The notes beneath the pieces are model-generated. The model saw only the letters and a program-made list of their open reading frames with translations. It was not told the origin of the DNA and did not search any database. Positions 7,728-62,771 of a DNA stretch of 64,000 nucleotides are shown here, in pieces (the stretch's first letter is position 1; each line of letters begins with the position of its first letter). The position numbers and the translations under genes were made by a program. Location: IMG/VR virus record IMGVR_UViG_3300034104_005687, positions 62,001 to 126,000 of that record. The stretch is one strand, 5' to 3'.

Positions 7728-8117
7728 GTGCTGTTGACCGTTGAGCATTCTAATTTGACTATGATACGTTTTGAAATCAATGGATCAGTGGTTGAGCACT
7801 ATCAACAACAACAAGAATATTGTGTTGATATAAACTGCAACGGCAATGTAGAAATATTCTTTGAACCATGGAAAATCAAACCATTGGTCAGAGTTGACAA
7901 TCATCTGTTGGATTACTGGTGCGCTGATATGCAATTGTACGATCACATGGTTAGACTTAAATGGGATTCAGGGTTCTATCATCGGTACCAAGAAAAAATT
8001 GTGCAGGGAAAAATAGATTACTTGAATCTAACAACACAAGAAGATATTGATTATTATTTGGGCATAAAAAATTCAAATCTAGATTTAGTTAGCCAACTCA
8101 AACAGTATTTAAAATGA
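7728..8117 (+). CDS. Hypothetical protein
   Basis: 129 aa; GTG start with AAGGA upstream; overlaps next gene (ATGA). Confidence 0.6.
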   Translation: MLLTVEHSNLTMIRFEINGSVVEHYQQQQEYCVDINCNGNVEIFFEPWKIKPLVRVDNHLLDYWCADMQLYDHMVRLKWDSGFYHRYQEKIVQGKIDYLNLTTQEDIDYYLGIKNSNLDLVSQLKQYLK

Positions 8118-9619
8118 GCCGAGTATTATTAGTTAACCTCCCCATGTACGACACATTGGCACCTCCCGGAGCATTGGCAGTTTTGGCAGCAATCTGCGAA
8201 CAAAATCAAAAGGCTTACGAGTTTTTAGACTTTAATATTTTTTTGCACCGCACACTCAACGAAAAAGAACTTGCTGAACTCAGTGATTGGTTGGTAGGTA
8301 TCACCATTGACTACCATGGTATCTCTGAAGAACTCAGACAAAAGGTGTTTGATCTATGGTGCGAGCAAATCAACAAAATAGATCCTGACAGTTTTGAATT
8401 CATTGGTATCAGTATTTTTAGTATGTGGAGTCTCAGGATGGCACAATTAATTTTGCCATGGCTGAGAAAAAGAACTTTATCCAAAATTGTATTGGGCGGC
8501 AACGGATGCAACAGTAAATTTTTTGATACAAAAATTGGCTTTTCTAGCTGGGTTGTTGAAAACCAATTGGCTGATTTTGTAGTGATCGGCGACGGTGAGC
8601 CCACGTTTGATGCCATACTCAAAGGCGAAACTTGTGTGCCCGGAGTTAATCAAGTACCTCAGAAAAACGACTGGGACATTGATCAATTCCCGATCCCCAA
8701 CTACAAAAACTTTGATCTGTCTTTGTATAGTGCAAAAAAAGTGTATGTTACCGGAAGTCGTGGATGTGTAAGAAACTGTACGTTTTGCGACATTGGTGCG
8801 ACTTGGCCTAAATTTCGATTCAGAAAAGCTGATAAGTTGGTAGAAGAAATCAAACAACATTACTATGATCTTGGGGTCACAGAATTTGATTTTACAGACA
8901 GTTTGATCAATGGTAGCATCAGTAACTTCTATCAATTCAACTGTTTGCTAGCTGAGGAAAAAGTCAAAAATCCTGATCTCAAAAATGTCAGCTACATTGG
9001 ACAATTTATTTGCAGACCCCAGTCTCAAATGTCTGCCTCACACTACGAAGCCATGTACTATGCAGGATGCAAGCAGGTTACCATTGGTATTGAAAGCTTT
9101 AGTGAAAATGTTCGATACCACATGCGTAAAAAATTTACCAATCTTGATATTGATTATCACATCGACCAATGCAGTAGATGGAATATCAAAAATGTTTGGT
9201 TGATGATTTGCGGGTACCCTACTGAGACATTGCAAGATCATGTTGAAAACTTAAACAGTTTAGAAAAATACTCCCTGTATGCCAAACAAGGAATAATCGA
9301 ACTAATTCGATGGGGAACTACCATGCACCTTATCGACGACACACCAATAACCAGTGCTGAGATGCTCAAGGATTTGGATATTGTATTGGATGCTCAAGGC
9401 AGCCTGGGATTTACCAGCACTTACAATTGGGTAAGTTCCAAGAATCCGTCTCTAGACCTTGCAGAGCGCATACGTCGGCGAGTTGAAATTCACGAACATT
9501 GTGTCAAGAATGGGTATCCTCAGCCAAGGGTCCGCCAAGAACTCAGCAGTTTGCTGACGCTGGCAAAGCAACACCTTGTGGGCCCAAGAAAAAAAATATT
9601 CGAGATTGGCCAGCTATGA
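8114..9619 (+). CDS. B12-binding-domain radical SAM enzyme
   Basis: N-terminal cobalamin-binding-like domain (GISIFS, IVLGG, VVIGDGE), SRGCVRNCTFC (CxxxCxxC), IGIES, GYPTET. Confidence 0.85.
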   Translation: MSRVLLVNLPMYDTLAPPGALAVLAAICEQNQKAYEFLDFNIFLHRTLNEKELAELSDWLVGITIDYHGISEELRQKVFDLWCEQINKIDPDSFEFIGISIFSMWSLRMAQLILPWLRKRTLSKIVLGGNGCNSKFFDTKIGFSSWVVENQLADFVVIGDGEPTFDAILKGETCVPGVNQVPQKNDWDIDQFPIPNYKNFDLSLYSAKKVYVTGSRGCVRNCTFCDIGATWPKFRFRKADKLVEEIKQHYYDLGVTEFDFTDSLINGSISNFYQFNCLLAEEKVKNPDLKNVSYIGQFICRPQSQMSASHYEAMYYAGCKQVTIGIESFSENVRYHMRKKFTNLDIDYHIDQCSRWNIKNVWLMICGYPTETLQDHVENLNSLEKYSLYAKQGIIELIRWGTTMHLIDDTPITSAEMLKDLDIVLDAQGSLGFTSTYNWVSSKNPSLDLAERIRRRVEIHEHCVKNGYPQPRVRQELSSLLTLAKQHLVGPRKKIFEIGQL

Positions 9620-10218
9620 AAATATTCTTAACCGGTGCATCAAGCGGCATTGGTGCTGCTTTGTTTGAAACTTTGTCAGTGGACCATCAAGTAATTGCAC
9701 CCAACCGTAACACATTTGATCTAACCAATACAAAACATATCGATGACTTAGATGTCGACTTTGACATGTTGATAAATTGTGCTGGTACCGGACTAGGCGG
9801 AAAACAACAGTTTGCAAATCATTGCAGCAACGATGTTGTTGAAATTTTCAATACCAATTTGCTTGCGCCAATTTTACTAACCAAAAACGTATTAAAAATC
9901 AATCCAGCATGTAAAATAGTCAACATTACCAGTACCAACAACAATCGGTATTGGCCAGGAGATTTAGTATACAGCCTGACCAAATCTTCATTGTCTATAT
10001 TTGGAGACATGCTTCGTGTCGAGTATCCTGATTGTTGTTTGCTAGAGATTAGATTGGGATTAACTAAAACCAATTTCAACAAAGCAAGATACAAGAACAC
10101 ACCTGATCGATATCAGGACATTTACAACAATCCGCATTTGCTTCCAGAAAATGTAGCAAACAAAATTGTCAGTGTGTTGTTTGACAATACAGTAAAATAC
10201 ATAGAAATTTCTCCTTGA
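9616..10218 (+). CDS. Short-chain dehydrogenase/reductase
   Basis: Start ATG 9616 (ATGA overlap): TGASSGIG, INCAG, catalytic YSLTK. Confidence 0.88.
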   Translation: MKIFLTGASSGIGAALFETLSVDHQVIAPNRNTFDLTNTKHIDDLDVDFDMLINCAGTGLGGKQQFANHCSNDVVEIFNTNLLAPILLTKNVLKINPACKIVNITSTNNNRYWPGDLVYSLTKSSLSIFGDMLRVEYPDCCLLEIRLGLTKTNFNKARYKNTPDRYQDIYNNPHLLPENVANKIVSVLFDNTVKYIEISP

Positions 10219-11312
10219 TGTATCCTTGGCAACTTTATCATTGGCATTTTGAAGTCAGTGGCAAATGCACACTGAAGTGTCCTCGGTGTCCTCGAAATGA
10301 TGCCAGCCCTGTACCGTGGTTAAACAAAGAACTGGATTTGAATTTTTTCAAAAAAATTCTAACTCCTGATCTACTTAAAAACACAGTCCAACGTATCACA
10401 ATGTGTGGTGACATTGGAGATCCAATCTATGCCAGTGAATACATCGAGATCGTAGACTACATCAAATCACATAATCCCAAAATACATGTGTATACCATCA
10501 CCAATGGCAGCTATAGAAAAGCTGATTGGTGGCAAGATTTTGCCAAAGTCAGTAACGAGTATGACACTATTAATTTTAGTATCGACGGGTACGATAATGA
10601 GTCAAACAATCTATACAGAGTTGGCAGCAACTGGGACAGTATCATGCAAGGCATGGATATCATGTGCCAACATAGTTCTGCATTTGTGTACTGGGCCACT
10701 ATTTTGTTTAAGTTCAATCAGGCCCACATTGATAGCATACGAGCCCAAGCACAAAACGCCGGGTGCGATGGATTACAACTTACGTACAGTACAAAATTTG
10801 GCAGCAAGTACGGAGAAGCATACGGTGGAGTCCATGACCCGCTTGAACCTGATCTAGAGTTTATAAGCAAAACTCATCGATATGAAAGATACTTTGAACA
10901 GCTCTCTGACAGACAACAGCTGAACCAATCTTATCTAGCTCATAATCAGCAACGTTTTATAGAAATCAAACAGCAGCATCAACAAATGATAACTCCCATG
11001 TGCAGCATTGGAAATCGAGGAATATACGTCAGTGCCGACGGAATACTGCATCCATGTAGTTGGGTCAGCTATCCATACCACAGTATCAGCACAGATCGAA
11101 AAACTATACATTTTAAAGATAGTTTTCATCAGATACATAGAAGCAAGTTGGATTTGAAATCTAGGTCACTGGATCAGGTCCTGAATGACCCAGTTTGGTC
11201 CAAACTGTTTGATACATTCGACAATCAAGGCAAAGCCTGGGTTGAATGTGAACAAAAATGCCATTGTAATTTAGTTGATCAGAACTATGCTGTAGGTTAT
11301 CTTACCAATTGA
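10218..11312 (+). CDS. Radical SAM enzyme with C-terminal SPASM/Twitch-like domain
   Basis: CTLKCPRC, GDIGDP, TNG, FSIDG; C-terminal C...ADGILHPC...CEQKC. Confidence 0.85.
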   Translation: MYPWQLYHWHFEVSGKCTLKCPRCPRNDASPVPWLNKELDLNFFKKILTPDLLKNTVQRITMCGDIGDPIYASEYIEIVDYIKSHNPKIHVYTITNGSYRKADWWQDFAKVSNEYDTINFSIDGYDNESNNLYRVGSNWDSIMQGMDIMCQHSSAFVYWATILFKFNQAHIDSIRAQAQNAGCDGLQLTYSTKFGSKYGEAYGGVHDPLEPDLEFISKTHRYERYFEQLSDRQQLNQSYLAHNQQRFIEIKQQHQQMITPMCSIGNRGIYVSADGILHPCSWVSYPYHSISTDRKTIHFKDSFHQIHRSKLDLKSRSLDQVLNDPVWSKLFDTFDNQGKAWVECEQKCHCNLVDQNYAVGYLTN

Positions 11313-11314
11313 CT

Positions 11315-11953
11315 ATGAATACCTTGAAAGAAATAATTGAGATTGAAAATTTTTTAACTGCTATTGAGCTTGAACAAGTAAACGCAGCAGTTGAAAAATG
11401 GCAAATGGTTCCTTATTATTCCAACGGTGGAAGATTTACCAAAGGTAGTTTAATTGCCAATCAGGCCATACAGCCATGGGATCAATCTGATCAAGCTGTC
11501 AGCATCATAAAACCAAAATTAGACAATCTGCTCGGCGAATATCGTGTGTCTGAACTGGTGCTTCAAGAATTATCTTTGCCCTGGGATGTTCACACTGATT
11601 ATGTTAGATCCAGCAATGTTGGGCGCCCTTATTATTCGGTCATTATTGCATTGAGCAATTGCGACAGTCGTACGATACTGTTTGATCAAACTGCCGAACA
11701 CAACGATTTTTATAAGTTCAAACAGACCAATAAAAAAACAACAAATCCAGTGGATCAAAACTTTTGGCAAAACAACCTAAGCCATTGTTGGGATGAAGAC
11801 CGAGAGTATTTGAGTCTTCGATATGTAAGTCGTCCCTGGAAACCTGGTAACTTGTTTTCATTCCAACGAAATGTATTACACTCCAGTGACAATTTTCATA
11901 CCAGAACTTCGTACCCCAAAAGATTTATACAAATATTAACAGACAAAATTTAA
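11315..11953 (+). CDS. 2OG-Fe(II) oxygenase-like protein
   Basis: IEIENFLT start, HTD (HxD), distal LHSS and KRFI residues; ATG 11315 preferred over TTG 11309. Confidence 0.55.
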   Translation: MNTLKEIIEIENFLTAIELEQVNAAVEKWQMVPYYSNGGRFTKGSLIANQAIQPWDQSDQAVSIIKPKLDNLLGEYRVSELVLQELSLPWDVHTDYVRSSNVGRPYYSVIIALSNCDSRTILFDQTAEHNDFYKFKQTNKKTTNPVDQNFWQNNLSHCWDEDREYLSLRYVSRPWKPGNLFSFQRNVLHSSDNFHTRTSYPKRFIQILTDKI

Positions 11954-11986: not shown

Positions 11987-12421
11987 ATGACATGGCTATA
12001 CAACAATCAACCGGTGGAAACTCTCCCAGAAGATTGTGTGGGCTTTGTGTACCTAATCACCAACATCAGAACCGATCGCAAATACATAGGCAAAAAACTA
12101 GCCAAGTTCTCAAAAACAACTCAACGAACAGTCAAACTCAAAAACGGCACCAAGAAGAAAAAAAAGATTCGCACCAAGGTGGACAGCGACTGGCAGGACT
12201 ATTACGGTAGCAGCCCAGAGCTCTCCCGGGATGTTGAATCTCAAGGCAAAGACAACTTCAAACGAGAAATACTTTATTACTGTAAATCTAAATCAGAATG
12301 CAGCTATATCGAAGCAAGAGAACAATTTTCACGACGAGTGCTAGAATCCCAAGACTGGTACAACGGACACATTCAGGTTCGTGTGCACGGCAGTCACATA
12401 ATCAACAAACTACACAGTTAA
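11987..12421 (+). CDS. Small GIY-YIG nuclease-family protein
   Basis: GFVYLITN...KYIGKK, YYGSS, conserved E (YIEARE) and N (WYN); Lys-rich insertion. Confidence 0.8.
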   Translation: MTWLYNNQPVETLPEDCVGFVYLITNIRTDRKYIGKKLAKFSKTTQRTVKLKNGTKKKKKIRTKVDSDWQDYYGSSPELSRDVESQGKDNFKREILYYCKSKSECSYIEAREQFSRRVLESQDWYNGHIQVRVHGSHIINKLHS

Positions 12422-12864
12422 GCAGTCAAGACTTGCACAGGTCAACCTCGTGTGCCGAACAGTAGAAACCTGGGCCCAGTGTCGCAGGGATCCGAAGCCT
12501 CGCCGCTGCCGCGAGCACTCAATCAGTATCCTTGACAGGACCACGATCGCTCAACACCTGCGATTTGATTGTTTGAACAGAATTTTAAAAGGGAAAAAGA
12601 CGTACTAGTGATAGTACACGTTTGTATGCATGTTAGCGTGTGTGATACAAATCGCCGTTGTGATAAAGACGCAGCTCGAGGTACCGGACAACCGCCTCTG
12701 CAATGCTGTAACGCTAAGTGACTTGCCCGACTCGGATGAAGTTTCTTTGCCCTGTGCGGGCAAAGTGTGACCATAAGATCTGGATGAAGCATTTAATCGC
12801 TTCGCTCTTTGATTCAACAACTGGTGTGAGCGACAGCGATACACCAAGAACTGCGTAGCAGTTC
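12422..12864 (+). ncRNA. Putative large structured non-coding RNA or origin-type element
   Basis: 443-nt gap with no credible ORF and about 10 hairpins, including GTACTA-GTGA-TAGTAC (GNRA loop on plus strand), CTTTGCCC/GGGCAAAG, GAACTGC/GCAGTTC, and a three-way junction closed by CAATCA/TGATTG. Confidence 0.6.
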
Positions 12865-13899
12865 TCAATAGTTGGCCACTGGATGTGTGTTGGGTTCTAG
12901 CAATTTGTGCAAGTCTTGTGTGTTGTTTGGAAACTTTGACAATTTCCAAGTTTTGAGATTTAGATTGTGTTGATATATCAAACAGTGCTGTATCACTACT
13001 TCTTGATCAAATGTTAGATCAATCTCGTAATACCAGTTGTTGACAATGCTGTCAACTATGTGCTGATAATTGTAACAGAAACTCAGCAAATTCAATTGTT
13101 TGGTTTGCCACTTTGCGTATATGGGTCTCCATGCTGCTAATCTTTCTGATACCATCTCTAAACTCAAATAGTTCAACATCTTTTGAACCGCTTGCTCGCC
13201 GCGGTACCACAACTCCTGGCAGTTGATCCACAAGTGAGGATATGTCATATTTTTTAAATATAACTCTTGATAGTAAAAAGGTCTTGAATCTAGTGCCTGT
13301 TGTTCTCGTTGGTCCCATATATCTGTTAGTCCTAAGTCTGTCCACGAGTCGATGCTGTCTTTAAAAAATAATTCTTGACGGTGCTGTTTTAATTCTCTGA
13401 CACTGTTGTATGGTTGATGATCAATTGTTTCTCCTTCTAATGCTCGCGGTTCTAAATGGTACAGTTGAATATTTGGATGATTTCCAATGTATATTAACTT
13501 TGCATTGCGAAGATTGCAAAATTCAAACACTTGATCAAAGTCTTGACTTATGTATTGAAAAATTTGTGATCTAACAGAAGGTATACCAATATCAGATATT
13601 GGTATATTTTTTTCATCTACTGCAACAACAAGTTTCAATGGGTATGGGTATGCGGAATACAGTTGGTGTTGCGGCATGGACAACAAGGACTCTATAAATT
13701 TTTGTGTGTTAACAAAGCCCATGGGATGATTTTTTTTATACCCATGGGCATTGAGTTCTTGCACAGGATCATTGGGCAATTCCAACCACTGTTGTTGATG
13801 TATATTGTAGTGATGTGTCTGCCCGGACAAGAAATGAATAGACCAATCAAAAAAAGTGCACCCTACTGGGTATGCACTAGTAATGCAATACACACTCAT
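12865..13899 (-). CDS. Hypothetical protein, possibly sulfotransferase-like fold
   Basis: 344 aa; N-terminal strand plus GCTFFDW resembles the sulfotransferase PAPS loop; weak. Confidence 0.5.
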   Translation of the reverse strand: MSVYCITSAYPVGCTFFDWSIHFLSGQTHHYNIHQQQWLELPNDPVQELNAHGYKKNHPMGFVNTQKFIESLLSMPQHQLYSAYPYPLKLVVAVDEKNIPISDIGIPSVRSQIFQYISQDFDQVFEFCNLRNAKLIYIGNHPNIQLYHLEPRALEGETIDHQPYNSVRELKQHRQELFFKDSIDSWTDLGLTDIWDQREQQALDSRPFYYQELYLKNMTYPHLWINCQELWYRGEQAVQKMLNYLSLEMVSERLAAWRPIYAKWQTKQLNLLSFCYNYQHIVDSIVNNWYYEIDLTFDQEVVIQHCLIYQHNLNLKTWKLSKFPNNTQDLHKLLEPNTHPVANY

Positions 13900-14231
13900 A
13901 AATTTTGATCAGGCCAGTCCCTAAACAAAGCATGCTGGATGTCACCTGCTACAAACTGATTGAAGCTACGGTGTTTGGTTTCCAGTTCGCCTTCCAATGG
14001 TGCTACCCTCTTGAAAGCACTGTCCATTTGAGCCATGTCTGTAAACTCCATAAGTATCATCCATTCAGGCATGTCTGCTATGCTACGAAAACCCATCTTG
14101 CAGCGTGTGATACGATAGTTTTCCAGTTTGCCCTCAGACTTCAGATGATCAAAAAAGCTCTTCATTCCGTTGACCCATTCAAGGTCTGAAATGTCTCCGG
14201 CCTTGTTGGCCCATATTGTGTAGATGTCCAT
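13896..14231 (-). CDS. DUF6614-like small alpha/beta barrel protein
   Basis: MDIYTIW...HLKSEG...RITRCKMG...EF.DMAQMDSAF...ALFRDWPD pattern. Confidence 0.6.
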   Translation of the reverse strand: MDIYTIWANKAGDISDLEWVNGMKSFFDHLKSEGKLENYRITRCKMGFRSIADMPEWMILMEFTDMAQMDSAFKRVAPLEGELETKHRSFNQFVAGDIQHALFRDWPDQNL

Positions 14232-14233
14232 AG

Positions 14234-14668
14234 TTACTCCAGTGGTCCTAATAATTCAAAGCCGTCTATGCTTTGTTTGTACAGGTGTGCTTGTTCAAGA
14301 TACAGATACTCAAATCCCTGTGCTTTGTAGATGGCACACTCTGTTTTTAGTGTTTCTATCCCTAACCGTAGTCGGGGATTGTTGTAGTTCCATGCAAATT
14401 GATCGCACAGGGCGTTTTTTTCGTCGTAGCGTTTGATCAAGCTGAATGCTGCCAGCTTGTCTCCGTCATAGTATCCAATCACATCAGTCATTGGATCAGT
14501 GTAACGGCTATCAAATATGGGCATTACACTGGCAAAATGTTTGTATTTGCAGTAATCTCTGTAGATGCTGTTCAGCTGAGTAATATCAGGTTCGCGCAGG
14601 TACTGCCATTTCACAGTAGGCTCATAGTTGGTTTTCGACAAATCAATACGTGCAAACTGATAGGTCAT
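14234..14668 (-). CDS. Aminoacyl-tRNA-protein transferase C-terminal-domain-like protein (ATE1/Bpt, GNAT fold)
   Basis: YYDGDKLAAFS...FAWNY..PRLRLG..TL..E....K.QGFEYLYL matches the ATE C-terminal pattern. Confidence 0.6.
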   Translation of the reverse strand: MTYQFARIDLSKTNYEPTVKWQYLREPDITQLNSIYRDYCKYKHFASVMPIFDSRYTDPMTDVIGYYDGDKLAAFSLIKRYDEKNALCDQFAWNYNNPRLRLGIETLKTECAIYKAQGFEYLYLEQAHLYKQSIDGFELLGPLE

Positions 14669-15168
14669 GTGCGCGGATCCTGACGATGCTGAAACAGGGA
14701 CTGCAAGTAATCTTCAGGCCATGTGTCATAGAATCCTTTGCGTGCCATAAGCTGAGCCTTGGTGTTTAGGTCGCTGACACTTTGTACCAAGGCCAGTGCA
14801 TAGGTTCCTTGATTCATGCAAACTCCGTTGACTATTTCAACATCTTTGGGATGATCTTCTAAGGCCAATAAATCAGCAGCCAACAAAAAATCTTTGTTGG
14901 CATGATCAAGGCTGCTGGCAAACAGGTCATGAGACCATTGATCAGGATCGTATGCATATATTATGACTTCGCTGAGGCCTATACCATGCCGTGCACGATG
15001 TTTGAGATCATAGTATGGGTCAGTGCCCAAGAATACCTGATAGCTATTTTTGAGTCTTGCACTGCGAGCATACGGACACGGAGAAAACCCTCCCAGGGCG
15101 GGATGCGGAACTTCCACAAAGTTCACAATCCAGCGTTCTATGTCTTGTTTTACAGTTTCTAAGTTCAT
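14665..15168 (-). CDS. DUF1415/DUF6875-like protein
   Basis: WIVNFVE.PHP.LGG.SPCPYAR and later DHP motif. Confidence 0.5.
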   Translation of the reverse strand: MNLETVKQDIERWIVNFVEVPHPALGGFSPCPYARSARLKNSYQVFLGTDPYYDLKHRARHGIGLSEVIIYAYDPDQWSHDLFASSLDHANKDFLLAADLLALEDHPKDVEIVNGVCMNQGTYALALVQSVSDLNTKAQLMARKGFYDTWPEDYLQSLFQHRQDPRT

Positions 15169-15344
15169 TAAAAATAAGGCAGCCCAGATTTTTTGGTTGT
15201 TTCCAAATTGCTTTTGATCAATTCGGCAATGCTTTCTCGATCACGATAACTCAACTGCATGGCTTGATCCAAAGTGATACCACCACGCATGCTCCAGCAA
15301 ATCCTGAACATTTCGTCCTTGATCTGCTTGGCCTCCTTTTCCAT
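15168..15344 (-). CDS. gp51-like baseplate hub/tail assembly chaperone (58 aa; probably also made as a frameshift fusion)
   Basis: Missed by ORF track: MEKEAKQIKDEMFRICWSMRGGITLDQAMQLSYRDRESIAELIKSNLETTKKSGLPYF; frame is open back to 15404. Confidence 0.75.
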   Translation of the reverse strand: MEKEAKQIKDEMFRICWSMRGGITLDQAMQLSYRDRESIAELIKSNLETTKKSGLPYF

Positions 15345-15382: not shown

Positions 15383-16219
15383 TCAGGAGGCGCCCGCGAA
15401 AAAATCAGTCATGTTCAGGGTAAATGGTTGATCGTATTGATGATTACAGTTGCTGCACTGAATGTGCATGGGTTGCAATTCACTTTTTTGCTTGTTGGCA
15501 ATGATAAAATCTCTGATCTGGCCAAACATGTTGCGATCGCAGTTGCCCAGCCATTCTGCAATGTGTTCTTCGTTGGAAACTTGTGCAGTGGGTGTCTTGA
15601 CCAGGGCAATACTTTGAGCCAGTGCTCGGGTAGTGATATTGTTGATTTTTTTCAGCACGTCGGACAACTGTTTCACACGATCTTTGTTTTCTGGATCCAT
15701 CTCAGTCAAGGACTGCAGGGCACGTTGTTCTTCAAACTGAGTCAGTGAATTTTCATTCATTTGTTTGTAGCTCATGGGTTGAAAATAAATTTCCAAATCT
15801 CCAATTTTCAAACTTTGTGAGTAATCCATGCCCTGGATATTGCTGAGAACCTGTGTGAGATTCATGGTATATTCTGTTTCTGTTTCGCATCCAGGGCAGG
15901 TAGAATTGATGTCAAGATCGTTGCCATAGGTAGCAATGCGTATGGCCACCAGCATGGTATCTAGATCAACGTTGGGCACAGCCCAGGCATCTTTGATGTT
16001 GGGAATACAGCTCTCAATCACACTGCACACTGATTGCCCATTGAACAAGGCATCGGGTGTACGATATGTGATTTCGTCCATGGTGGTCATGGGTAACACA
16101 GGATATTCGCCGTTGACTGTGTGCTCAATGGCGTTGGCAGGGTAAAATTTGCCCTGACTGGGCAACCGAATAAAGATAGCGGGTTGCCTAAAGTATTGAC
16201 TCAAGGGATTGGAATTCAT
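15383..16219 (-). CDS. gp26-like baseplate hub assembly protein
   Basis: LPSQG, PMTTMDE, AIRIATYG, CPGC and CSNC zinc pairs, terminal DFF. Confidence 0.75.
   Translation of the reverse strand: MNSNPLSQYFRQPAIFIRLPSQGKFYPANAIEHTVNGEYPVLPMTTMDEITYRTPDALFNGQSVCSVIESCIPNIKDAWAVPNVDLDTMLVAIRIATYGNDLDINSTCPGCETETEYTMNLTQVLSNIQGMDYSQSLKIGDLEIYFQPMSYKQMNENSLTQFEEQRALQSLTEMDPENKDRVKQLSDVLKKINNITTRALAQSIALVKTPTAQVSNEEHIAEWLGNCDRNMFGQIRDFIIANKQKSELQPMHIQCSNCNHQYDQPFTLNMTDFFAGAS
15398..15404 (-). other. Putative -1 programmed ribosomal frameshift site T TTT TTC
   Basis: GAT TTT TTC near end of gp26-like ORF; the -1 frame opens exactly here and runs into the gp51-like ORF. Confidence 0.7.
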
Positions 16220-16233
16220 GGATTTTCTCGCGG

Positions 16234-16257
16234 TAAATATGACTATAACTATTTATA
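16234..16257. promoter_or_regulatory. Pair of face-to-face late promoters (TAAATA plus, TATAAATA minus)
   Basis: TAAATA 16234-16239 (+) and TATAAATA 16250-16257 (-) in the 50-nt gap between divergent genes. Confidence 0.65.
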
Positions 16258-34896: not shown

Positions 34897-37800
34897 ATGC
34901 CATTGAACTTTCCACTTAACCCTGTACTGAACCAGTCCTACACATTTGCAGGCAAAACCTGGATATGGAATGGATCAGGTTGGGCACTAAAAACTCTTGG
35001 TGCTATCAACAACATACCAGTGGGCAATGTCACTCCCAGCACAGGTGGATTTACTGCATTAACAGCAACGTCTGTGTCAGCCACAGGCAACGTCACAGGT
35101 GGTAATGTAGTCACAGCTGGACAAGTCAGTGCAGGCGGAAATGTCACAGGTGGCAACGTAGTCACAGCTGGACAGGTCAGTGCAGGCGGAAATGTCACAG
35201 GTGGTAACGTAGTCACTGCTGGACGAGTCAGTGCCACCGGCAATGTGTCGGGTAATTTTATCTTGGGCAATGGTAGTTTGCTAACTGGCATAACAACCAC
35301 CTACGGCAATGCCAATGTGGCTGCATATTTGCCCACATATACAGGTAACTTAAATCCTGGCAATCTGGTAAGTTCAGGTGTGGTATCGGGTGCAAACTTG
35401 ATCACTACAGGACAAGTCAGTGCTGCTGGCAACGTCACTGGTCAATTCTTTATTGGTAATGGTAGTTTATTAACTGGAATTGCTACAAGTTATGGCAATG
35501 CCAATGTGGCTGCATATCTTCCTACATATACAGGCAACTTAAATCCAGGTAATTTAACCAGCAATGGTAATGTGTCAGGTGCAAACTTGATCACTGCAGG
35601 ACAAGTCAGTGCCACGGGCAATGTCACAGGTAATTTTATCTTGGGTAATGGTAGTTTGCTAACTGGCATAACAACCACCTACGGCAATGCCAACGTTGCT
35701 GCATACCTTCCTACATATACAGGCAACTTAAATCCTGGTAATTTAACCAGCAATGGCAATGTGTCAGGTGCAAACTTGATCACAGCAGGCCAGATTAGTG
35801 CTGCTGGCAACGTCACAGGCAACTACATTCTAGGCAATGGTGCCTTGTTAACCGGATTGCCTGCTACCTACGGCAATGCCAATGTGGCTGCATATTTGCC
35901 CACATATTCTGGCAATATTGGCGCAAACAACATAACCGCCACCGGATTGATCAGTACCACAGGCAATGTACAAGGCGCATTCATTCTTGGCGACGGCGGA
36001 TTTTTAACCAACGTCACAGTGAGCTCCAATGTTGCTGTAAGCCAAATCGCCAATGGTACCACAGTGTTGAGTGTAGCTGGGGCCAACGGTAATTTGGTCG
36101 CCACAGTAAATGGCGTCAGTAACGTGGCAGTGTTCACGCCCACAGGTGTTGAATTTGCCGGTAACTTGACGCCTGTAGCCAATGTCACTTACAACCTTGG
36201 TTCGCCAACTCGAGCATGGAACGACTTGTACCTAAGTGGTAACACCATTTATCTCAACGATTCCACTATCTCAGCCAACACAACAGCATTTACGCTGACC
36301 ACACCACTAGGCGGCACTGCTATTATTGAAGGTGGCGGCACTATTAAAGCGTACGGTAACTCCAACGTTGCTGAATATCTTCCAACTTACACTGGTAATC
36401 TAGCAAGTTTGCAAGGCAATGTTACGACCACGGCCAACATCAGTGGACAATATATTTTAGGCAATGGTGCATTTTTAACAGGCATTACAGCTGGAACCAG
36501 CTATGCCAATGCCAATGTTGCTGACTACTTGGCCAGTGGCACAGTAACATCAAATATCATTACATCTGGCAATATCTCAGGTGGCAACATAATTGGCAAC
36601 GGATCTGGATTAACATCAATAACTGGCGCCAATGTCACAGGTACAGTGGCCAACGCCACATTCGCTACATCAGCTGGATCAGCTACATCGGCTACCACTG
36701 CTGGAACAGTCACAACAAATGCACAACCCAACATAACATCAGTTGGTACATTGACTGCACTGAGTGTGGGCACTGGCAACATCACTGGTGGCAATTTGTT
36801 GTTGAGCGGTGCTATCATTGATTCAGCCCAGCTGGATCTACAAACTTCTGCTGCCAATGCCAACATTGTGTTGACACCCAATGGCACAGGCAATGTAAAT
36901 CTTGGTCGCATGAGTGCATCAGGCAACATTACTGCTTCAACATATTTTGGATCAGGTGCAGGCCTAACAAGTATTCCAGGTGCCAACATCACAGGTACAG
37001 TGGCCAACGCCACATTCGCTACATCAGCTGGATCAGCTACCACAGCAGGTACTGTGACCACAAATGCACAGCCCAATATCACAAGTGTTGGAACGTTGAC
37101 TGCACTCAGTGTCAGTGGCAACATTGTAAGTGGAGCTGGGGTAGGCGGAAATATCTCTGGTGCCAATGTTGTAACTGCCAACTTGTTTACTGGTACTTTG
37201 TCTACTGCGGCACAGCCCAACATAACATCTGTTGGTACTCTGACATCATTGAGCGTAACAGGTAATATCAATGGCGGCAATGTTAACTCAACATTCTTTG
37301 GCAACGGCGCTGGATTAACATCAATCACAGGTGCCAACGTCACAGGCACAGTGGCCAATGCCACATTTGCCACATCAGCTGGTACAGTAGCCGCAAATGC
37401 ACAGCCCAACATTACCAGTGTAGGCATACTGATCGACTTGAGTGCGTCGGGCAATGTCACTGCTGGTAACTTAACTGTTGGATCAGGCACTATAACCGGC
37501 GGCAATATCAATGGCGCAAATTTCAATGGTAATGTGGCATTTGGCGCTGGCACAATAGGAGGTTCTGGCAACATCAGCGGTGGTAACCTAAATGCCACAG
37601 GATTGATCAGTGCAACTGGCAACATCACCGGCAACAATATTTTTGGCAACATCCAGGGAACAACAGGAGATATACTCAATGTTACTAGTACAAACCTAAC
37701 AGTTACAAATATCTCTGCACCAAATCCTGGCAACGCTGTCAATATTGGTGCTGGCGGAAACAACAATCTCGTCGTAAGCAACGTGCTTGTACAGGTACAA

Positions 37801-40800
37801 AACGTTCCCTTGAGCGTGGCTGGCAACGTTACAGGTGGTAATGTATTAACTGGTGGATTGATCTCAGCCACAGGTAATATCACAGGCGGCAATCTAAGTG
37901 TCACAGGATTGATTGGTGCAACTGGCAATGTAGCTGGCGGTAATTTGATCACTGGTGGATTGATCACCGCAACAGGTGCTATTACTTCTACAGCAAACGT
38001 TGTTGCTAACAATGTCAACGTAACTCAGTCTGTGACTGGCACTGTGTTGTCAGCCACAGGCAACATCACTGGCGGCAATGTCAACACAGCTGGTTTGATA
38101 TCAGCCACTGGTGCAGTAAATTCAGGCAGCGTAAGCGCCACTGGCAACGTAGTTGGTGGGAACGTCAACACTGCTGGCTTGATATCTGCAGGTGGCAACG
38201 TCACAGGTGGCAACGTGTCTACAGGTGGATTGATTACTGCTACTGGCAACGTCACTGGTGGCAACGTCAACACTGCAGGGTTGGTATCAGCTACTGGCAA
38301 TGTTGCTGGTGGAAATATCACCACACAAGGTATTGTCAGTGCTTCTGGCAACATTGTGACTTCAGGATTCTTTGTAGGTAATTTTGCCGGCAATATCACA
38401 GCAAACATTGTGGTGCCCGGAGCCAACACACAGGTTTTGTTCAACACCAATGGCAACGCTGATGCAGTAGCTGGGTTGACTTACAACAAAGATTCAAATG
38501 TGCTGGCAGTGCTGGGTGTGCTGTCTGCACAAGGCAACGTTGTGGCCAACAATGCAGTGATCAGCGGCCTGACCACTGTTACTGGCAACGTCATAGGTGG
38601 CAACGTGGTCACTGCAGGACAAGTTAGTGCTACAGGCAACGTAACTGGCAATTACTTTATTGGTAATGGTAGTTTGCTAACAGGAATTGCTGGATCTTAT
38701 GGCAACACAGAAGTTGCTGCATACTTGCCAACTTATACTGGCAGCCTTCCTAACTTAACAGGAGTAGTGACCACTACTGCCAACGTCACTGGGGGCAACA
38801 TCATTGCCACAGTGGATGTGATTGCACAAACAGGCAGATTTGTTGGCAATGGTTCAGGATTGACCAATATTGTTGCTGCCAATGTCACAGGTACAGTGGC
38901 CAATGCTACTTCGGCTGTTACTGCTGGTACTGTGACCACAGCCGCACAACCCAATATCACAAGTGTTGGCACATTGACATCATTGAGTTCAAGTGGCAAC
39001 ATCACAGGTGCTAATATCAATGGCAATGGTTCTGGATTGACATCAATAACTGGGGCCAATGTCACAGGTACAGTGGCCAATGCTACTTTTGCTACTTCAG
39101 CTGGATCTGCTACTAGTGCAACCACAGCTGGTACAGTTACCACAGCCGCACAACCCAACATTACATCAGTTGGTACATTGACATCATTGAGTGCTACAGG
39201 CAACATCACTGGTGGTAACCTAAATGCCACAGGATTGAGTTTGAGCGGCAACGTTGTGAGTGCCATCAACACTGTTGCCAACATTACAACCACTGCCAAC
39301 ATTGCAGGTGGGTTCTTCATTGGTAATGGTAGTTTGTTAACTGGTCTAGCAGCAACATATGGCAACGCCAACGTTGTTGCTAATTTGGCTGCACTTGGTT
39401 CTAATCCAATATTGTCAACTGCCAACATCAGTGGCGCTAATATCAACGCCAGCGGAATTGTTAGTGCTACAGGCAACATCAACGGCGGAAACATCAATGT
39501 CACTGGTAATATTGTAGACACTGGTGCTCTAACAATTAGTACAGGTAGCGACGGCAATATTGCATTGGCACCAAACGGCACAGGTATAGTTACAGCTTCG
39601 GGTGCATTTAGTGCTGTTGGCAACATCACTGGTGGCAATTTGAATGCCACAGGATTGAGTTTGAGTGGCAACGTGATCAGTGCAATCAATACCACTGCCA
39701 ACATTACAACCACCGCCAACGTCACTGCTGGCAATATTTCAACCAGCGGATCACTGGGCAACATCACTGGTGCTAATGTTATTTCTTCAGTTACTTTAAG
39801 TGCCACTGGCAATGTGGTTGGTGGCAATGTCACTACAACTGGATTGATAACTGCTTCAGGTAATATTACATCAGCAGGCAATATCGCTGCCAACTTCTTT
39901 ATTGGTAATGGTAGTTTACTAACTGGTATATCAGCTGGCGGAACGCCAACTAGTATCGTCAACGGAACATCCAACGTTGCGGTTGCATTGAACGGCAACA
40001 CCACAATTGGTGTAGCAGGAACCACAGTTGGCACATTCCACTCAGGAGGCGCAATTGTTGTTGGCACTTTGGCAGCAGGAAATCTAACTGGTACATTAAC
40101 CACAGCCGCACAGCCCAATATCACAAGTGTTGGCACATTGACATCATTGAGCTCAAGTGGCAACATCACTGGTGCCAATATCAATGGCAATGGATCTGGA
40201 CTCAGCAGCATAACTGGCGCCAACGTCACAGGCACCGTGGCCAATGCCACTTCGGCTGTATCTGCAACTACAGCAGGTACTGTGACTACAGCGGCGCAGC
40301 CCAATATCACAAGTGTTGGCACATTGACAAGTTTGAGTTCAAGTGGCAACATCACTGGTGCAAACATCAATGGCAATGGTTCTGGATTAACATCAATCAC
40401 TGGCGCCAATGTCACAGGCACAGTGGCCGCAGCTACCACAGCAGGCACAGTGACCACAAATGCACAGCCCAACATTACATCAGTTGGCACATTGAGCATA
40501 CTCAATGTAACTGGCAACATTGTAAGTGGAGGTGGTACTGGTGGAAATATCTCTGGTGCCAACGTCATAACTGCCAACCTGTTTACTGGTACACTGACTA
40601 CTGCTGCACAGCCCAACATAACATCTGTTGGCACATTGAGCTCACTCAGTGTCAGTGGCAACGTAACAGGCGGCAATTTGAGTTTGAGTGGAAATGTGAT
40701 TGGACCTCTAAATTCAACAGCCAATGTCAACACCACTGGCAACATCACAGCAGCATATTATTTTGGTGATGGCAGTCAACTAACTGGTGTAACAGCATCT

Positions 40801-43800
40801 GGTGTAAATGCTGCTGCCTTAACTGGCAACACACTGAGTTCCAATGTGTTGTTCAGCAGTTTGACTAGCGTTGGTACTTTGACTGCACTCAGTGTCAGTG
40901 GCAACGTTGTTGGTGGCAACATCAACACTGCTGGACAAGTTACTGCAACTACATTAGAAACAACTGGCAACGCTGTGATCGGCGGAGACCTAGTGGTCAA
41001 CGGCAACACTATTTCAGTCAACATTGAAAGTCTCAATGTTCAGGATCCAATTATTGGGCTAGGAAGAGGTGCAAACAACGCTCCTCTCACAGTCAACGAC
41101 GGCAAAGATCGTGGCGAACAACTTTGGTACTACAGTACCGCAGAAAATTCTGCTTTTATTGGATATCAAAATGCTTCAGGTAATTTGATTGCAGCCAGCA
41201 ATGTCAGCATTGCCAACGAGATTGTAACAGTCAACAGCTACGGAACATTTGTGGTTGGTAATGTTGTTGCACAAACATTGAGCGCAAGTGGCAATATCAC
41301 TGGCGCCAACATCAATGGCAACGGATCTGGACTCAGCAGCATCACTGGAGCCAATGTCACGGGTACAGTGGGATCAGCAACAACAGCCACAACTGCTGGC
41401 ACAGTGACCACCGCAGCACAACCCAACATTACCTCAGTTGGCACATTAACATCATTGAGTGCGTCAGGCAACATTGATGGGGCTAATATCAACGGCAACG
41501 GATCTGGATTAACATCAATAACTGGCGCCAATGTCACAGGTACTGTGGCCAATGCTACTTTTGCTACTTCAGCTGGATCTGCTACTAGTGCAACCACAGC
41601 AGGTACTGTGACCACAAATGCACAGCCTAACATTACTAGTGTGGGCACATTGACATCATTGAGTTCAAGTGGAAATGTCACTGGCGGTAATATTATCACT
41701 GGCGGGGTAATCTCAGCAACTGGAAATATTACTGGTGCAAACATCAATGGCAACGGATCAGGTCTTAGCTCATTAACTGGTGCAAACGTCACAGGTACTG
41801 TGGCCAATGCTACTTTTGCTACTTCAGCTGGATCTGCTACTAGTGCAACCACAGCAGGTACTGTGACCACAGCAGCACAGCCCAATATCACAAGTGTTGG
41901 TACACTAACATCATTGAGTGCTTCAGGCAATATTGATGGTGCAAATATCAATGGCAATGGATCAGGCCTGACATCAATAACTGGTGCTAATGTCACAGGC
42001 ACTGTAGCCAACGCCACTTTTGCTACATCAGCAGGTAGTGCTACTAGTGCAACCACAGCTGGTACAGTTACCACAGCCGCACAACCCAACATTACATCAG
42101 TTGGTACATTGACATCATTGAGTGCGTCAGGCAACATCACTGGTGCAAACATCAACGGCAATGGATCAGGACTCAGCAGCATCACCGGTGCCAATGTCAC
42201 AGGTACTGTGGCCAATGCTACATTTGCTACTTCAGCAAACAATGCTACTACAGCAGGTACTATAACTGCTAACGCACAACCCAACATTACATCAGTTGGT
42301 ACGTTGATATCATTGAGCTCAAGTGGCAACATCACTGGTGCAAATATCACCACAGCTGGCATCATGACTGCAACTGGCAACATAGTGACCAACGACACAG
42401 TGATTACCAGCAACTTGCAATTGTCAGGATCTATAGTTGGCTCTTTAAACGTAACTGCCAACATTTCTGGTGCAAACGTCAACACCACCAACATAAGTTT
42501 GAGTGGCAACGTTATTACTCCGTTGAGAGTAAGTGGCAACATCACTGGCACCAACATTGAAAGTACCGCTGCAACCACAGTTGGCACTAACCTAACTGTC
42601 AGTGCTGGTAACATTGTGGTAAACACTGGTTTTGCCAGCGTAAATGGCAACGTCACTGGTGGCAACATCAACACTGCAGGACTAGTCAGTGCCACAGGCA
42701 ACATACGTGGTGGCAATATTGTGTCCGCAGGTTCTGTCAGCAGCGCAGGCACAGTTACTGCTGTTGGCAACGTTACTGGCGGAAACATTACTACTGCAGG
42801 CTTGGCCACTGTGACTGGCAATATACAAGGTGGCAATATTGTGTCCGCAGGTTCTGTCAGCAGCACAGGTGCTGTCACAGCTGGCGGCAACGTCACGGGC
42901 AGCAACATTACAACTGCTGGGCTAATCACTGCCACTGGCAACGTCACTGGCAGCAACATAAACACAGCAGGATTGATCAGTGCTGTAGGCAACGTAGTAG
43001 CAGGCAATTTTAGTACTGCAGGATTGATCACTGCGGCTGGTAATATCACAGGCGGCAATGTTATTGCTACCACATTCATTGGAAACTTACAGGGTAACAT
43101 TAGTCTGCCTGGCAGCAACACTCAAGTGTTGTTCAACAACAATGGCATTATAGGCAGTGACTCTGGTTTGGTATACGACAGTATAACCAATGCACTCAGC
43201 GTTGGCGGAACATTTGCCACCAACAATGGCGGCGACGTCAACGTATCAGGTCGTGTCAGCGTTGCAGGCAACATCATTACCAACACAGGCACAGTGAGTG
43301 GTGCTGCCGTTGAATCTGGCAGCACTGTGAGTGCAATTGGCAATGTGGTTGGTGGCAACATCAATACGGGTGGTAGAGTCAGTGCAACAGGCACAATAAC
43401 TGCTGTTGGCAACATCACAGGCGGCAACATTGCCACAGGTGGACTTGTAACTGCCACAGGCAATATCAACACTGGCGCAGGTATCAGTGCTGTTGGCAAC
43501 ATCACAGGCGGCAACGTCATTACCACAGGTGCTGTAATTGGACAACTTGATGTTGGCAATATTGCAGTCACAGGCAACATCAACGTACAAAGTGCTACTG
43601 CAAACACATTTGTCAGCGCAATTGGCAACGTCATAGGTGGCAATGTAAACTCTTTGGGCGTGCTCAGTGCAGTGGGCAACATCAATGGTGCCAATCTCAG
43701 CATAACAGGCCTTGGCAATATTGTGACACTGGAAATTGTGACACTGGCCAATGTCAAGAGTACTGAAATTTCAAACAGCACAACCAGCGGAGCATTCAAA

Positions 43801-44133: not shown

Positions 44134-44466
44134 ATGGCAAACACATTCAAACGTAAACTAAGTAGAGGAATAGGTAATTCTGCTATTCAGGTAGGAACTT
44201 ACACAGTAGGCGCAAATGTTACCACAGTGGTAATTGGACTTACTGTGACCAACACTTCGGGCAGTGCAATTTCGGCCAATGTTTTTCTCTACAACGGTGC
44301 GGCCAACACAAGCATTGTTTCCACAGCGCCAATCAGTTCAGGTTCCAGTTTGGTTGTGGTTGGCGGCGATCAAAAGGTTGTGTTAGAAACAGGAGACAGC
44401 ATCTACGTTCAAAGCAGTGCAGCATCCAGTGTTGATGTTGTGATGAGCATTATGGAAATCACATAA
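44134..44466 (+). CDS. Small virion structural protein
   Basis: 110 aa beta-rich, MANTFK...KVVLETGD.I...DVVMSIMEIT. Confidence 0.65.
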   Translation: MANTFKRKLSRGIGNSAIQVGTYTVGANVTTVVIGLTVTNTSGSAISANVFLYNGAANTSIVSTAPISSGSSLVVVGGDQKVVLETGDSIYVQSSAASSVDVVMSIMEIT

Positions 44467-61874: not shown

Positions 61875-62440
61875 CCTTACCCAAACTTCTGATTATTGGC
61901 AACGCACGCCACGGCAAAGACACTGTGTGTGATATTCTACGTGAAGAATTTGGGTATAATTTTAGATCTAGTTCGGACTTTTGTGCTGAAAAGTTTATCT
62001 ATACCGAACTAGCACCCAAGTATGGGTATACCAGCTACGAGCAGTGCTTTGAAGATCGACACAATCATCGTGCTGAATGGTACAACATGATTCATGAATA
62101 CTGCCGAGACGATTATGCTAGACTGGGCAGAGAAATTTTTGCTGAAAACGAAATCTATTGCGGCCTACGCAACAAAGCAGAATTCCATGCCATGAAGAAT
62201 ACCAATGTGTTTGATTATGCTATTTGGGTAGATCGTAGTGATCACTTGCCTACAGAGGACAAATCCAGCATGAGCCTGGAAATTTGGATGGCTGATTATG
62301 TGATTGACAACAACGGTACACTATCGGATCTCAAGCGCAACACTCGTGAGCTGGTTAGCCGTCTGGTTGCAAATCACCAGGTCGCCATATCGAATCAGAT
62401 TTTGATAAATCGACTTCGCAGTTACGACACACCGTTTTGA
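61871..62440 (+). CDS. Deoxynucleoside monophosphate kinase-like P-loop protein
   Basis: ATG 61871; GNARHGKDT, ADYVIDNNGT. Confidence 0.7.
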   Translation: MTLPKLLIIGNARHGKDTVCDILREEFGYNFRSSSDFCAEKFIYTELAPKYGYTSYEQCFEDRHNHRAEWYNMIHEYCRDDYARLGREIFAENEIYCGLRNKAEFHAMKNTNVFDYAIWVDRSDHLPTEDKSSMSLEIWMADYVIDNNGTLSDLKRNTRELVSRLVANHQVAISNQILINRLRSYDTPF

Positions 62441-62706: not shown

Positions 62707-62771
62707 TATTTATAGGTGGACCTTTGCAAAGGGCAACATAGAGGGCGGTTTTTTCAATATACCTATAAATA
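62707..62771. promoter_or_regulatory. Divergent late promoters TATAAATA
   Basis: TATAAATA 62707-62714 (-) and 62764-62771 (+). Confidence 0.75.

Follow-up and report, generated by a model that had tools for sequence, protein, structure and literature searches.

A large uncultured freshwater phage carries a cut-down, putative relative of the enzymes that move amino acids from charged tRNA onto other molecules. Its gene is paired in most loci examined with a gene for a small heme-oxygenase-like protein and is often accompanied by an L-arginine amidinotransferase homologue. This arrangement looks like an undescribed phage pathway for making or tailoring an arginine-related compound rather than a protein-tagging device, although this reading is held with no more than even confidence. 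No description of such a module was found in the literature searched.

A conserved gene run downstream of a baseplate hub gene

The window analyzed is a stretch of 64,000 nucleotides (positions 62,001 to 126,000 of IMG/VR virus record IMGVR_UViG_3300034104_005687). The original prediction described four coupled ORFs continuing from gp26/gp51-like genes, and this observation was confirmed. The relevant features, in the order in which they would be transcribed, are:

16250..16257 (-), T4-late-promoter-like motif TATAAATA, 31 nt upstream of the gp26-like start codon; promoter function is inferred
15383..16219 (-), gp26-like baseplate hub gene (278 aa), first gene of the run
15168..15344 (-), 58-aa ORF without a family hit
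14665..15168 (-), 167-aa DUF1415/DUF6875 ("cytochrome P422")-like protein (p167), a putative thiolate-heme oxygenase
14234..14668 (-), 144-aa stand-alone ATE_C-type GNAT core (Ate1/Bpt branch), a putative aminoacyl-tRNA-dependent transferase without ATE_N
13896..14231 (-), 111-aa DUF6614 protein, probably a ferredoxin-like alpha+beta barrel
12865..13899 (-), 344-aa ORF without an assignable family, variable cargo in the slot after DUF6614

The junctions between the last four ORFs are a 4-nt overlap, a 2-nt gap and a 4-nt overlap. The p167 start shares one base (TAATG) with the stop of the 58-aa ORF, which follows the 278-aa gene after 38 nt. The 278-aa protein is a member of T4_baseplate PF12322 (E 2.4e-17; 63.8 bits against a cut-off of 24.5) and matches PHROG 150, baseplate hub (E 2.6e-17). 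The 58-aa ORF had been labeled gp51-like, but this was not supported by any search; Pfam, NCBIfam and PHROGs gave no family hit.

Related viral loci were compared to assess whether this arrangement exceeds chance. The order gp26, 58 aa, 167 aa, 144 aa, DUF6614 recurs in 73–78 of 80 related loci, with the 58-aa ORF present in 73. The transferase (81–94% identity across the lineage) and DUF6614 are as conserved as the portal, at about 85% each, whereas median identity is only 49% for gp26 and 52% for the 58-aa ORF. The 344-aa ORF is not a constant member, as it is present in 6 of 80 loci at 43–59% identity, and the slot between DUF6614 and the SegE-like gene varies from 394 to 2068 bp. It has 422 homologues, none with a name or a Pfam domain. 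Single-sequence scans of Pfam, NCBIfam and PHROGs and profile searches of PDB and Pfam found nothing for it, and a sulfotransferase-like reading of its N-terminus was not borne out by a Sulfotransfer_3 search, which was empty.

The motif upstream of gp26 is one of 4 CTATAARTA matches in the window, against 0.48 expected. An exact TATAAATA upstream of gp26 occurs in only 1 of 61 related loci. However, a relaxed form, TATAA[A/G]TA, lies 35–38 nt upstream of the gp26-like ATG in 49 of 61, and none occurs inside the gp26 to DUF6614 run. Co-transcription with the baseplate genes, which the original prediction had assumed for tail chaperones, is inferred from spacing and this one conserved late-promoter-like motif.

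The 144-aa protein resembles the ATE_C core of Ate1/Bpt

The 144-aa protein was not detectable as a single sequence in Pfam, NCBIfam or PHROGs. It gave no ATE_C (PF04377) hit even at E 1 to 10, and a search of the whole phage genome with ATE_C found nothing at E 10. A profile built from its family, however, hits only Ate1 among 177,635 PDB sequences (7wfx/8e3s; E 1.2e-10 to 2.5e-9). Relatives of 225–268 aa found by profile reach 25.5–33.8 bits against the ATE_C cut-off of 25, and look-alike clusters in the Atlas are viral and carry ATE_C, although one is auto-named N-acetyltransferase.

Alignment of the family profile to klAte1, read against PMC9351520, places W93 at Trp260 (tRNA 3' end), E110 at Glu277 (Arg pocket; Gln in Bpt) and Y130-K131 at Tyr303-Lys304 (catalytic Lys). 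These columns are conserved in 61, 59, 59 and 62 of 64 family members, respectively, and the equivalent of Ser273 is also kept. The residues that in Ate1 bind the tRNA 3' end and the aminoacyl group are retained. In contrast, the ATE_N domain is absent. The polypeptide begins at the conserved Arg-containing strand that follows the Cys motif of ATE_N, no ATE_N hit occurs in it or in ten longer relatives, and the alignment shows that the short forms lack the 55–90 N-terminal residues. The protein has no Zn/Fe-S cysteines and none of the residues that recognize N-terminal Asp/Glu, and it is 144 aa long compared to about 235 aa for Bpt and about 500 aa for Ate1.

The predicted structure (pLDDT 94.9) has a GNAT fold, with Z 12–15 to many GNAT domains. 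It is best matched by the tRNA-dependent enzymes MprF (aa-PG synthases; Z 15.1), FemX (Z 14.3) and the peptide synthases Sba18/Sbb17 (Sba18, Z 13.1), always to the second, donor-binding GNAT domain. There is no detectable sequence similarity to these enzymes, which carry a first GNAT-like domain for the acceptor that is absent here. Sba18/Sbb17 show that this fold can aminoacylate small molecules. Fold alone does not separate tRNA-dependent from acyl-CoA tandem GNATs, because VipF (Z 14.5) and NMT (Z 14.2) tie with MprF and FemX. The protein is also acidic (pI 5.4), which is not what one expects of a tRNA binder.

The partner has a predicted thiolate-heme oxygenase-type fold

The original prediction suggested that neighboring genes might supply the missing half of the transferase. 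This was not supported, as the predicted fold of p167 is that of DUF1415/DUF6875/P422 and not of an ATE_N or first-GNAT domain. By sequence, p167 falls below Pfam membership, with DUF6875 at E 0.014 and 15.9 bits (cut-off 24.5) over residues 8–46 only, and it matches phrog_28122 (E 3e-11). Its model (pLDDT 95.2) matches Atlas clusters carrying DUF6875/DUF1415 with TM 0.82–0.83. The only outlying PDB match is the arginine N-hydroxylase AglA (9ub3_A), with Z 7.4 over 149 aligned residues, and the next match has Z 4.0. The AglA value lies in the range common for chance arrangements. Foldseek against PDB found nothing below E 0.001, a sequence profile against PDB found nothing, and YqcI_YcgG (PF08892) against the genome found nothing, so that no sequence link to YqcI/YcgG was seen.

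Both reference families, P422 (DUF6875) and the YqcI/YcgG enzymes such as AglA and DcsA, are thiolate-heme amino-acid oxygenases that hydroxylate free amino acids, Trp and Arg (bioRxiv 10.64898/2025.12.11.692455; PMC12866846). With these, p167 shares a four-stranded sheet sandwiched by helices and a Cys-Pro after helix 1, as in the P422 RxGxVCP heme-binding motif. Cys31, in PCP(Y/F)A, is invariant, and Cys31-Pro32 is invariant or nearly so. The equivalence of Cys31 to the heme ligand is inferred from residue ranges rather than from a residue-level superposition. p167 is shorter than these enzymes (167 aa against 180–300), does not keep the P422 substrate-binding motifs, and has its own invariant motif, LEDHP, at 103–107. 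Complex prediction for the transferase with p167 gave a score of 0.01 against a mark of 0.32, which is no evidence either way.

The 111-aa protein is a full member of DUF6614 (PF20319; E 4.4e-23, 81.9 bits against a cut-off of 25, over the full length). It shows weak similarity to the N-terminal domain of coproheme decarboxylase (E 0.04). The 44-aa anti-Druantia protein Druad1 is said to resemble DUF6614 (bioRxiv 10.1101/2024.04.14.589459), but this link was judged too weak to use.

Co-occurrence across divergent phage lineages

Failure of these genes to co-occur had been named beforehand as part of what would refute the prediction; they do co-occur. p167 is next to the transferase in 78 of 80 loci of this lineage, and a homologue is adjacent in five further divergent contexts (related loci L082, L086, L088, L114 and L117). 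DUF6614 joins the pair in three lineages and follows the ATE_C-like gene in L114 and L117. The association is not absolute, as p167 homologues occur without the transferase in three isolates and the transferase occurs without p167 in loci L085, L094 and L091.

An L-arginine amidinotransferase homologue is adjacent in five arrangements. Its profile matches AGAT, StrB1, HsvA and SxtG over the full length (E 2e-37 to 1e-32), with C358, the catalytic, C-terminal Cys of the G-G-x-H-C-x-T motif, and H222 invariant. It is not inside the cassette in this window, but the phage genome has two copies elsewhere, one of them at G000:C1:17404-18432. Among cultured phages, tblastn of the 144-aa and DUF6614 proteins against 50,697 phage records gave no match, nor did blastn of the cassette. 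Profile searches for the transferase and p167 in the nearest cultured relatives (Phosso, Atu_ph07, PA5oct and PHA46) also found nothing.

Interpretation of the module

The original interpretation, a stand-alone transferase that may tag proteins or aminoacylate a small molecule with help from its neighbors, was partly supported. The stand-alone Ate1/Bpt-type core, its retained residues and the co-occurrence agree with it; the missing-half proposal and the 344-aa ORF as a fixed member do not. Of the two targets proposed, the partner enzymes (a heme oxygenase-like protein, an L-arginine amidinotransferase homologue and an alpha+beta-barrel-like DUF6614) favor the small molecule, but protein tagging is not excluded.

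The preferred reading, about as likely as not, is a short tailoring pathway acting on an arginine-derived or other amine-bearing small molecule. In this view the 144-aa protein is a donor-side core lacking the ATE_N domain that recognizes the protein acceptor. It would take an aminoacyl group from charged host tRNA and put it on an amine. The group is probably basic, such as Arg, because the Glu that binds Arg in Ate1 is kept. The translationally coupled heme protein would oxidize the substrate or the product, and where an amidinotransferase is present it would move the guanidino group of arginine. In this phage the genes appear to be read from a late-type promoter together with baseplate-hub genes. 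The analysis itself establishes homology, conserved residues, fold, co-occurrence and strong purifying conservation. In the absence of biochemical data for any member of the family, tRNA dependence and aminoacyl transfer, Arg preference, heme binding, a small-molecule acceptor and late expression are inferred.

Protein tagging, in which Arg or Leu would be added to N-termini of host or phage proteins that are then handed to ClpS/ClpAP or otherwise changed in stability, appears unlikely. In its favor, all characterized Ate1/Bpt enzymes act on protein N-termini (PMC9351520), and the homology and catalytic residues described above also speak for it. That known Ate1/Bpt acceptors are proteins, not small molecules, counts against the preferred reading. 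The phage genome also encodes a ClpS adaptor (84.8 bits; G000:C1:202503-202739, in coordinates of that genome). However, ClpS is clade-wide and is present in Phosso, Atu_ph07, PA5oct and PHA46, which lack the transferase, and was rejected as specific support. The ATE_N domain, which in Ate1 carries the acceptor-recognizing residues (Arg80, Tyr25, Tyr87 and the Zn/Cys motif), is absent and no neighbor resembles it, and the recurrent partners are small-molecule enzymes.

An ordinary acyl-CoA-dependent GNAT, an N-acetyl or N-acyl transferase acting on a metabolite, an antibiotic-like compound or a host protein, is less likely still. The protein is a single GNAT domain of typical size and the matches to VipF and N-myristoyltransferase noted above are compatible with this. 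Against it, the profile search finds only Ate1 among solved structures, no Acetyltransf family was hit, and the residues specific to tRNA-dependent transfer (Trp260, Tyr303 and Lys304 equivalents) are nearly invariant. By direct reading, the CoA-pyrophosphate motif Q/R-x-x-G-x-G/A is not present at the beta4-alpha3 loop, where the stretch around the invariant G103 reads P98-R-L-R-L-G103-I-E. About equally improbable is modification of a macromolecule or packaged polycation of the virion, such as a side chain of a baseplate or other structural protein, phage DNA, or a polyamine that condenses the 349-kb genome. This would explain the position directly after baseplate-hub genes behind a late-type motif. 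HsvA, one of the closest solved relatives of the associated amidinotransferase, is reported to act on polyamines, and an AdoMet decarboxylase gene lies near the transferase in L085. In other lineages, though, the pair lies among nucleotide-metabolism or unknown genes and not structural ones, and no DNA-modification enzyme family was found in the cassette.

A bolder possibility is not excluded but remains doubtful. Phages of several uncultured lineages may encode a compact tRNA-dependent biosynthetic pathway combining a thiolate-heme oxygenase, an Ate1-type aminoacyl transferase core, often an arginine amidinotransferase, and a DUF6614 protein. It would use the host's charged tRNA late in infection to make an aminoacylated, oxidized guanidino compound, for example a DNA-condensing polycation or an agent against competitors. 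It would also be the first Ate1/Bpt-branch enzyme whose acceptor is not a protein.

Ate1/Bpt enzymes are known only as protein N-terminal taggers of the N-degron pathways. Here the ATE_C-like core stands alone, is viral, has thousands of environmental copies, is as conserved as the portal protein, and in most loci is linked to a heme-oxygenase-like partner. This would extend the chemistry of this enzyme branch and add to the few known cases of tRNA-dependent, non-ribosomal bond formation. It would also give a first functional context to phage members of DUF1415/DUF6875 and DUF6614, and it points to small-molecule biosynthesis by phages, which is still poorly documented.

Genomic setting of the predicted transferase cassette

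The window corresponds to bases 62001-126000 of a 349-kb IMG/VR virus record that is rated 97% complete by CheckV. The record is that of a T4-like jumbo myovirus, with a Portal_T4 gene, a gp26-like hub gene and giant structural ORFs. By portal protein, the nearest cultured relatives are Sinorhizobium phage Phosso, Agrobacterium phage Atu_ph07 and Pseudomonas phage PA5oct, at 48–56% identity. The features of the window referred to below are as follows.

8114-11953, plus strand: a cluster of a radical SAM enzyme (501 aa), a short-chain dehydrogenase, a second radical SAM enzyme (365 aa) and a 214-aa unknown, converging on the cassette
11987-12421, plus strand: a SegE-type GIY-YIG endonuclease gene (PF19835, E 9e-34)
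12430-12574, plus strand: a Polynucleobacter-1 RNA (RF01718, 79 bits)
12865-15168, minus strand: the cassette, four ORFs of 344, 111, 144 and 167 aa
27033-27121, plus strand: a freshwater-2 RNA motif (RF02980, 70 bits), between a minus-strand 403-aa ORF and a plus-strand 234-aa ORF
34897-44130, 44466-48836 and 49230-53198, plus strand: three giant ORFs of 3077, 1456 and 1322 aa in the structural region
62707-62771: a pair of T4-late-type motifs similar to that found upstream of the gp26-like gene in related loci

The four cassette ORFs are joined by a 4-nt overlap, a 2-nt gap and a 4-nt overlap. The start codon of the 167-aa ORF shares one base with the stop codon of a 58-aa ORF, which in turn follows a gp26-like baseplate hub gene matching PF12322 (E 2.4e-17) and PHROG 150. 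The arrangement described in the original prediction is correct, and only its ‘gp51-like’ label for the 58-aa ORF has no support.

Both RNA families are known from freshwater samples. The Polynucleobacter-1 RNA lies directly 3’ of the SegE-like gene on the same strand, in the convergent gap next to the cassette, and was also found in three related loci at 112–120 bits (L003 7446-7581, L009 8203-8338 and L069 7104-7239; L numbers denote individual related loci). Together with a window GC of 39–50%, this hints at a freshwater host such as Polynucleobacter. The SegE-type gene occupies the same position in 63 of 80 related loci at 70–92% identity and behaves like a resident gene rather than a mobile homing endonuclease. 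A homologue of the 365-aa radical SAM enzyme is nearby in 49 of 80 loci, but at only 21–58% identity, and a radical SAM gene is also convergent on the transferase in the P0129 context.

The 144-aa protein is a remote relative of Ate1

As a single sequence, the 144-aa protein matched no Pfam, NCBIfam or PHROG model. A word search returned 2874 close homologues of 144 aa, all unnamed, and an exhaustive profile search returned 153 cluster representatives, the distant ones being 225–268 aa in length and matching over their central part. Of ten of these longer relatives tested, seven passed the ATE_C threshold (25.5–33.8 bits) and an eighth scored just below it (20.6 bits), whereas none had ATE_N. 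A profile built from 64 family members hit only Ate1 arginyltransferases among all PDB sequences, at E 1.2e-10 to 2.5e-9.

When this alignment was read against the published klAte1 work (PMC9351520), the nearly invariant residues of the family were found to fall on functionally tested Ate1 positions. W93 falls on Trp260, which contacts the tRNA 3’ end, in 61 of 64 sequences. S/T106 (47 of 64) and E110 (59 of 64) fall on Ser273 and Glu277, which form the pocket for the Arg side chain; Bpt, which transfers Leu, has Gln at the Glu277 position. Y130 (59 of 64) and K131 (62 of 64) fall on Tyr303 and Lys304, the latter being the FemX-like catalytic lysine.

The AlphaFold model of the protein is confident (pLDDT 94.9) and superposes best on the second GNAT domain of tandem-GNAT enzymes, namely MprF (Z 15.1), FemX (Z 14.3) and Sba18/Sbb17 (Z 13.1), although VipF (Z 14.5) and N-myristoyltransferase (Z 14.2) score about the same. 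The predicted fold is thus that of the donor-side GNAT of a two-domain transferase, while the sequence places the protein in the Ate1/Bpt branch. The acceptor-side domain, ATE_N, is absent.

The 167-aa neighbour resembles thiolate-heme enzymes in predicted fold

The 167-aa protein (p167) gave a weak DUF6875 hit (E 0.014, residues 8–46) and PHROG hits of unknown function. Its model is confident (pLDDT 95.2) and shows a four-stranded sheet between helices. A Foldseek search of the PDB with this model found nothing, whereas an exhaustive structural alignment gave a single outlier, AglA (9ub3_A), at Z 7.4 with 149 of 167 residues aligned and the next match at Z 4.0. A shape search of the Atlas gave TM 0.82–0.83 to clusters that carry DUF6875 and DUF1415.

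AglA is a YqcI/YcgG thiolate-heme enzyme that N-hydroxylates arginine compounds, with Cys44 as the heme ligand (PMC12866846). DUF6875 was recently renamed cytochrome P422 and is a thiolate-heme family that hydroxylates tryptophan, with the heme-binding motif RxGxVCP (bioRxiv 10.64898/2025.12.11.692455). In the phage family, Cys31 is invariant within PCP(Y/F)A, directly after helix 1, and an LEDHP motif at residues 103–107 is also invariant. These features suggest a small heme-thiolate oxygenase, with heme binding and the exact equivalence of Cys31 to the known ligands remaining inferences. The protein is not a substitute for ATE_N, and prediction of a complex with the transferase gave no verdict.

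The 111-aa protein is a clear member of DUF6614 and shows faint similarity to the ferredoxin-like N-domain of coproheme decarboxylase (E 0.04). The 344-aa protein has 422 unnamed homologues and no family detectable in the searches performed.

Co-occurrence of the cassette genes

In 80 viral loci of the same lineage, the order gp26, 58 aa, 167 aa, 144 aa, DUF6614 is kept. Of these loci, 78 have p167 and 78 have DUF6614, and the rest are mostly cases in which the contig ends short of the gene. The 344-aa gene is present in only 6. The slot that it occupies, after DUF6614, varies from 394 to 2068 bp and is a cargo hotspot holding other genes elsewhere; in one sub-lineage, for example, it holds a phosphoribosyltransferase and a nucleoside phosphorylase of PNP/UDP type instead (L046 6770-7823).

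Median identity of each gene in the related loci to the window
Transferase (144 aa): 84.7%
DUF6614: 85.3%
Portal: 84.5%
p167: 71.1%
58-aa ORF: 51.7%
gp26: 49.2%

Divergent members of the transferase family (32–53% identity) were also examined in unrelated genomic contexts, where p167-like genes were found beside the transferase in five loci.

Gene neighbours of divergent transferase family members, by locus
L082: p167-like, transferase, amidinotransferase-like
L086: p167-like, transferase, a 211-aa family
L088: long-form transferase between an amidinotransferase-like gene and a convergent p167-like gene
L114: p167-like, transferase, amidinotransferase-like, DUF6614
L117: p167-like, transferase, DUF6614
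L096: transferase, amidinotransferase-like
L085, L094, L091: no p167 neighbour

Two further unnamed protein families recur next to divergent ATE_C-like genes. One is 211–218 aa long (L085 2543-3199 and L086 3039-3674), and the other is 200–248 aa long and ends in YYxxLW(D/N) (L086 3733-4479 and L092 227-829).

Within the lineage of the window itself, the amidinotransferase-like gene is inserted either between the transferase and DUF6614 (L009-L011, L013, L016) or between p167 and the transferase (L005, L012). A profile of these proteins matched L-arginine:glycine amidinotransferase, StrB1, HsvA and SxtG at E 2e-37 to 1e-32, with the catalytic Cys invariant. The genome from which the window is taken (G000:C1) has two amidinotransferase-like paralogues outside the window. 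The first, at G000:C1:17404-18432, lies next to a carbamoyltransferase-like gene, and the second, at 205722-206639, lies next to an Asp/Arg-hydroxylase-like gene and a UvdE endonuclease.

Conversely, p167 homologues occur without the transferase in three cultured phages, HMO-2011, S-SCSM2R and CRP-810, and in the last two they sit next to 2OG-Fe(II) oxygenases. The nearest cultured relatives of this phage have neither gene.

Predicted transcription of the cassette

No terminator-like or sigma-70-like site of note separates the genes. A TATAAATA motif lies 31 nt upstream of the gp26-like start codon. In related loci the conserved form is TATAA[A/G]TA, which was found 35–38 nt upstream of the start in 49 of 61 loci, and none occurs between gp26 and the end of DUF6614. 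The motif is part of a conserved near-palindrome, CCTATAAGTA-N8-TATATTTATAGG, located in the approximately 50 nt between the gp26-like gene and the divergent upstream gene in related loci (e.g. L003, L004 and L014). It places a T4-late-type motif on each strand, would serve both divergent genes, and looks like a bidirectional late promoter, although in the window only the gp26-side half is intact. One late transcription unit is inferred from these sequence features alone.

Interpretation

The transferase core is under selection as strong as that on the portal protein and keeps the donor-side catalytic residues; from this conservation it is inferred to be very probably active. The retained Glu at the Arg-pocket position, the arginine-using amidinotransferase that repeatedly joins the transferase, and a partner whose closest solved relative oxidises arginine compounds all point to arginine or guanidino chemistry. 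The absence of ATE_N, and partners that are all small-molecule enzyme types, point to a small amine acceptor rather than a protein N-terminus. A short tRNA-dependent tailoring pathway is therefore favoured, although with only about even confidence. The gene arrangement, the profile similarity to Ate1, the conserved residues and the recurrence of the partner genes were observed directly, while catalysis, use of tRNA, heme binding, the nature of the acceptor and late expression are inferred. The original interpretation was partly supported: the stand-alone Ate1/Bpt-like domain and a possible small-molecule acceptor are in keeping with these results, but its suggestion that neighbours supply the missing half of the transferase is not.

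Tagging of protein N-termini, which the original prediction had also put forward, remains possible but is considered unlikely. The genome does encode a ClpS adaptor (G000:C1:202503-202739, 84.8 bits), but ClpS is shared by the whole clade, including phages without the transferase, and is present in five related uncultured genomes and in Phosso, Atu_ph07, PA5oct and PHA46. A plain acyl-CoA GNAT is less likely still, being disfavoured by the profile evidence, the conserved residues and the missing CoA-binding motif. A role in modifying virion components, DNA or a packaged polycation is regarded as similarly doubtful.

Some relatives of the transferase are already labelled automatically as ‘ATE_C domain-containing’ in database clusters, but no paper on a phage Ate1/Bpt-like enzyme or on this module was found in the literature searched. 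What appears to differ from the known enzymes is that the Ate1/Bpt catalytic core is here detached from its acceptor domain and recruited into a phage enzyme module.
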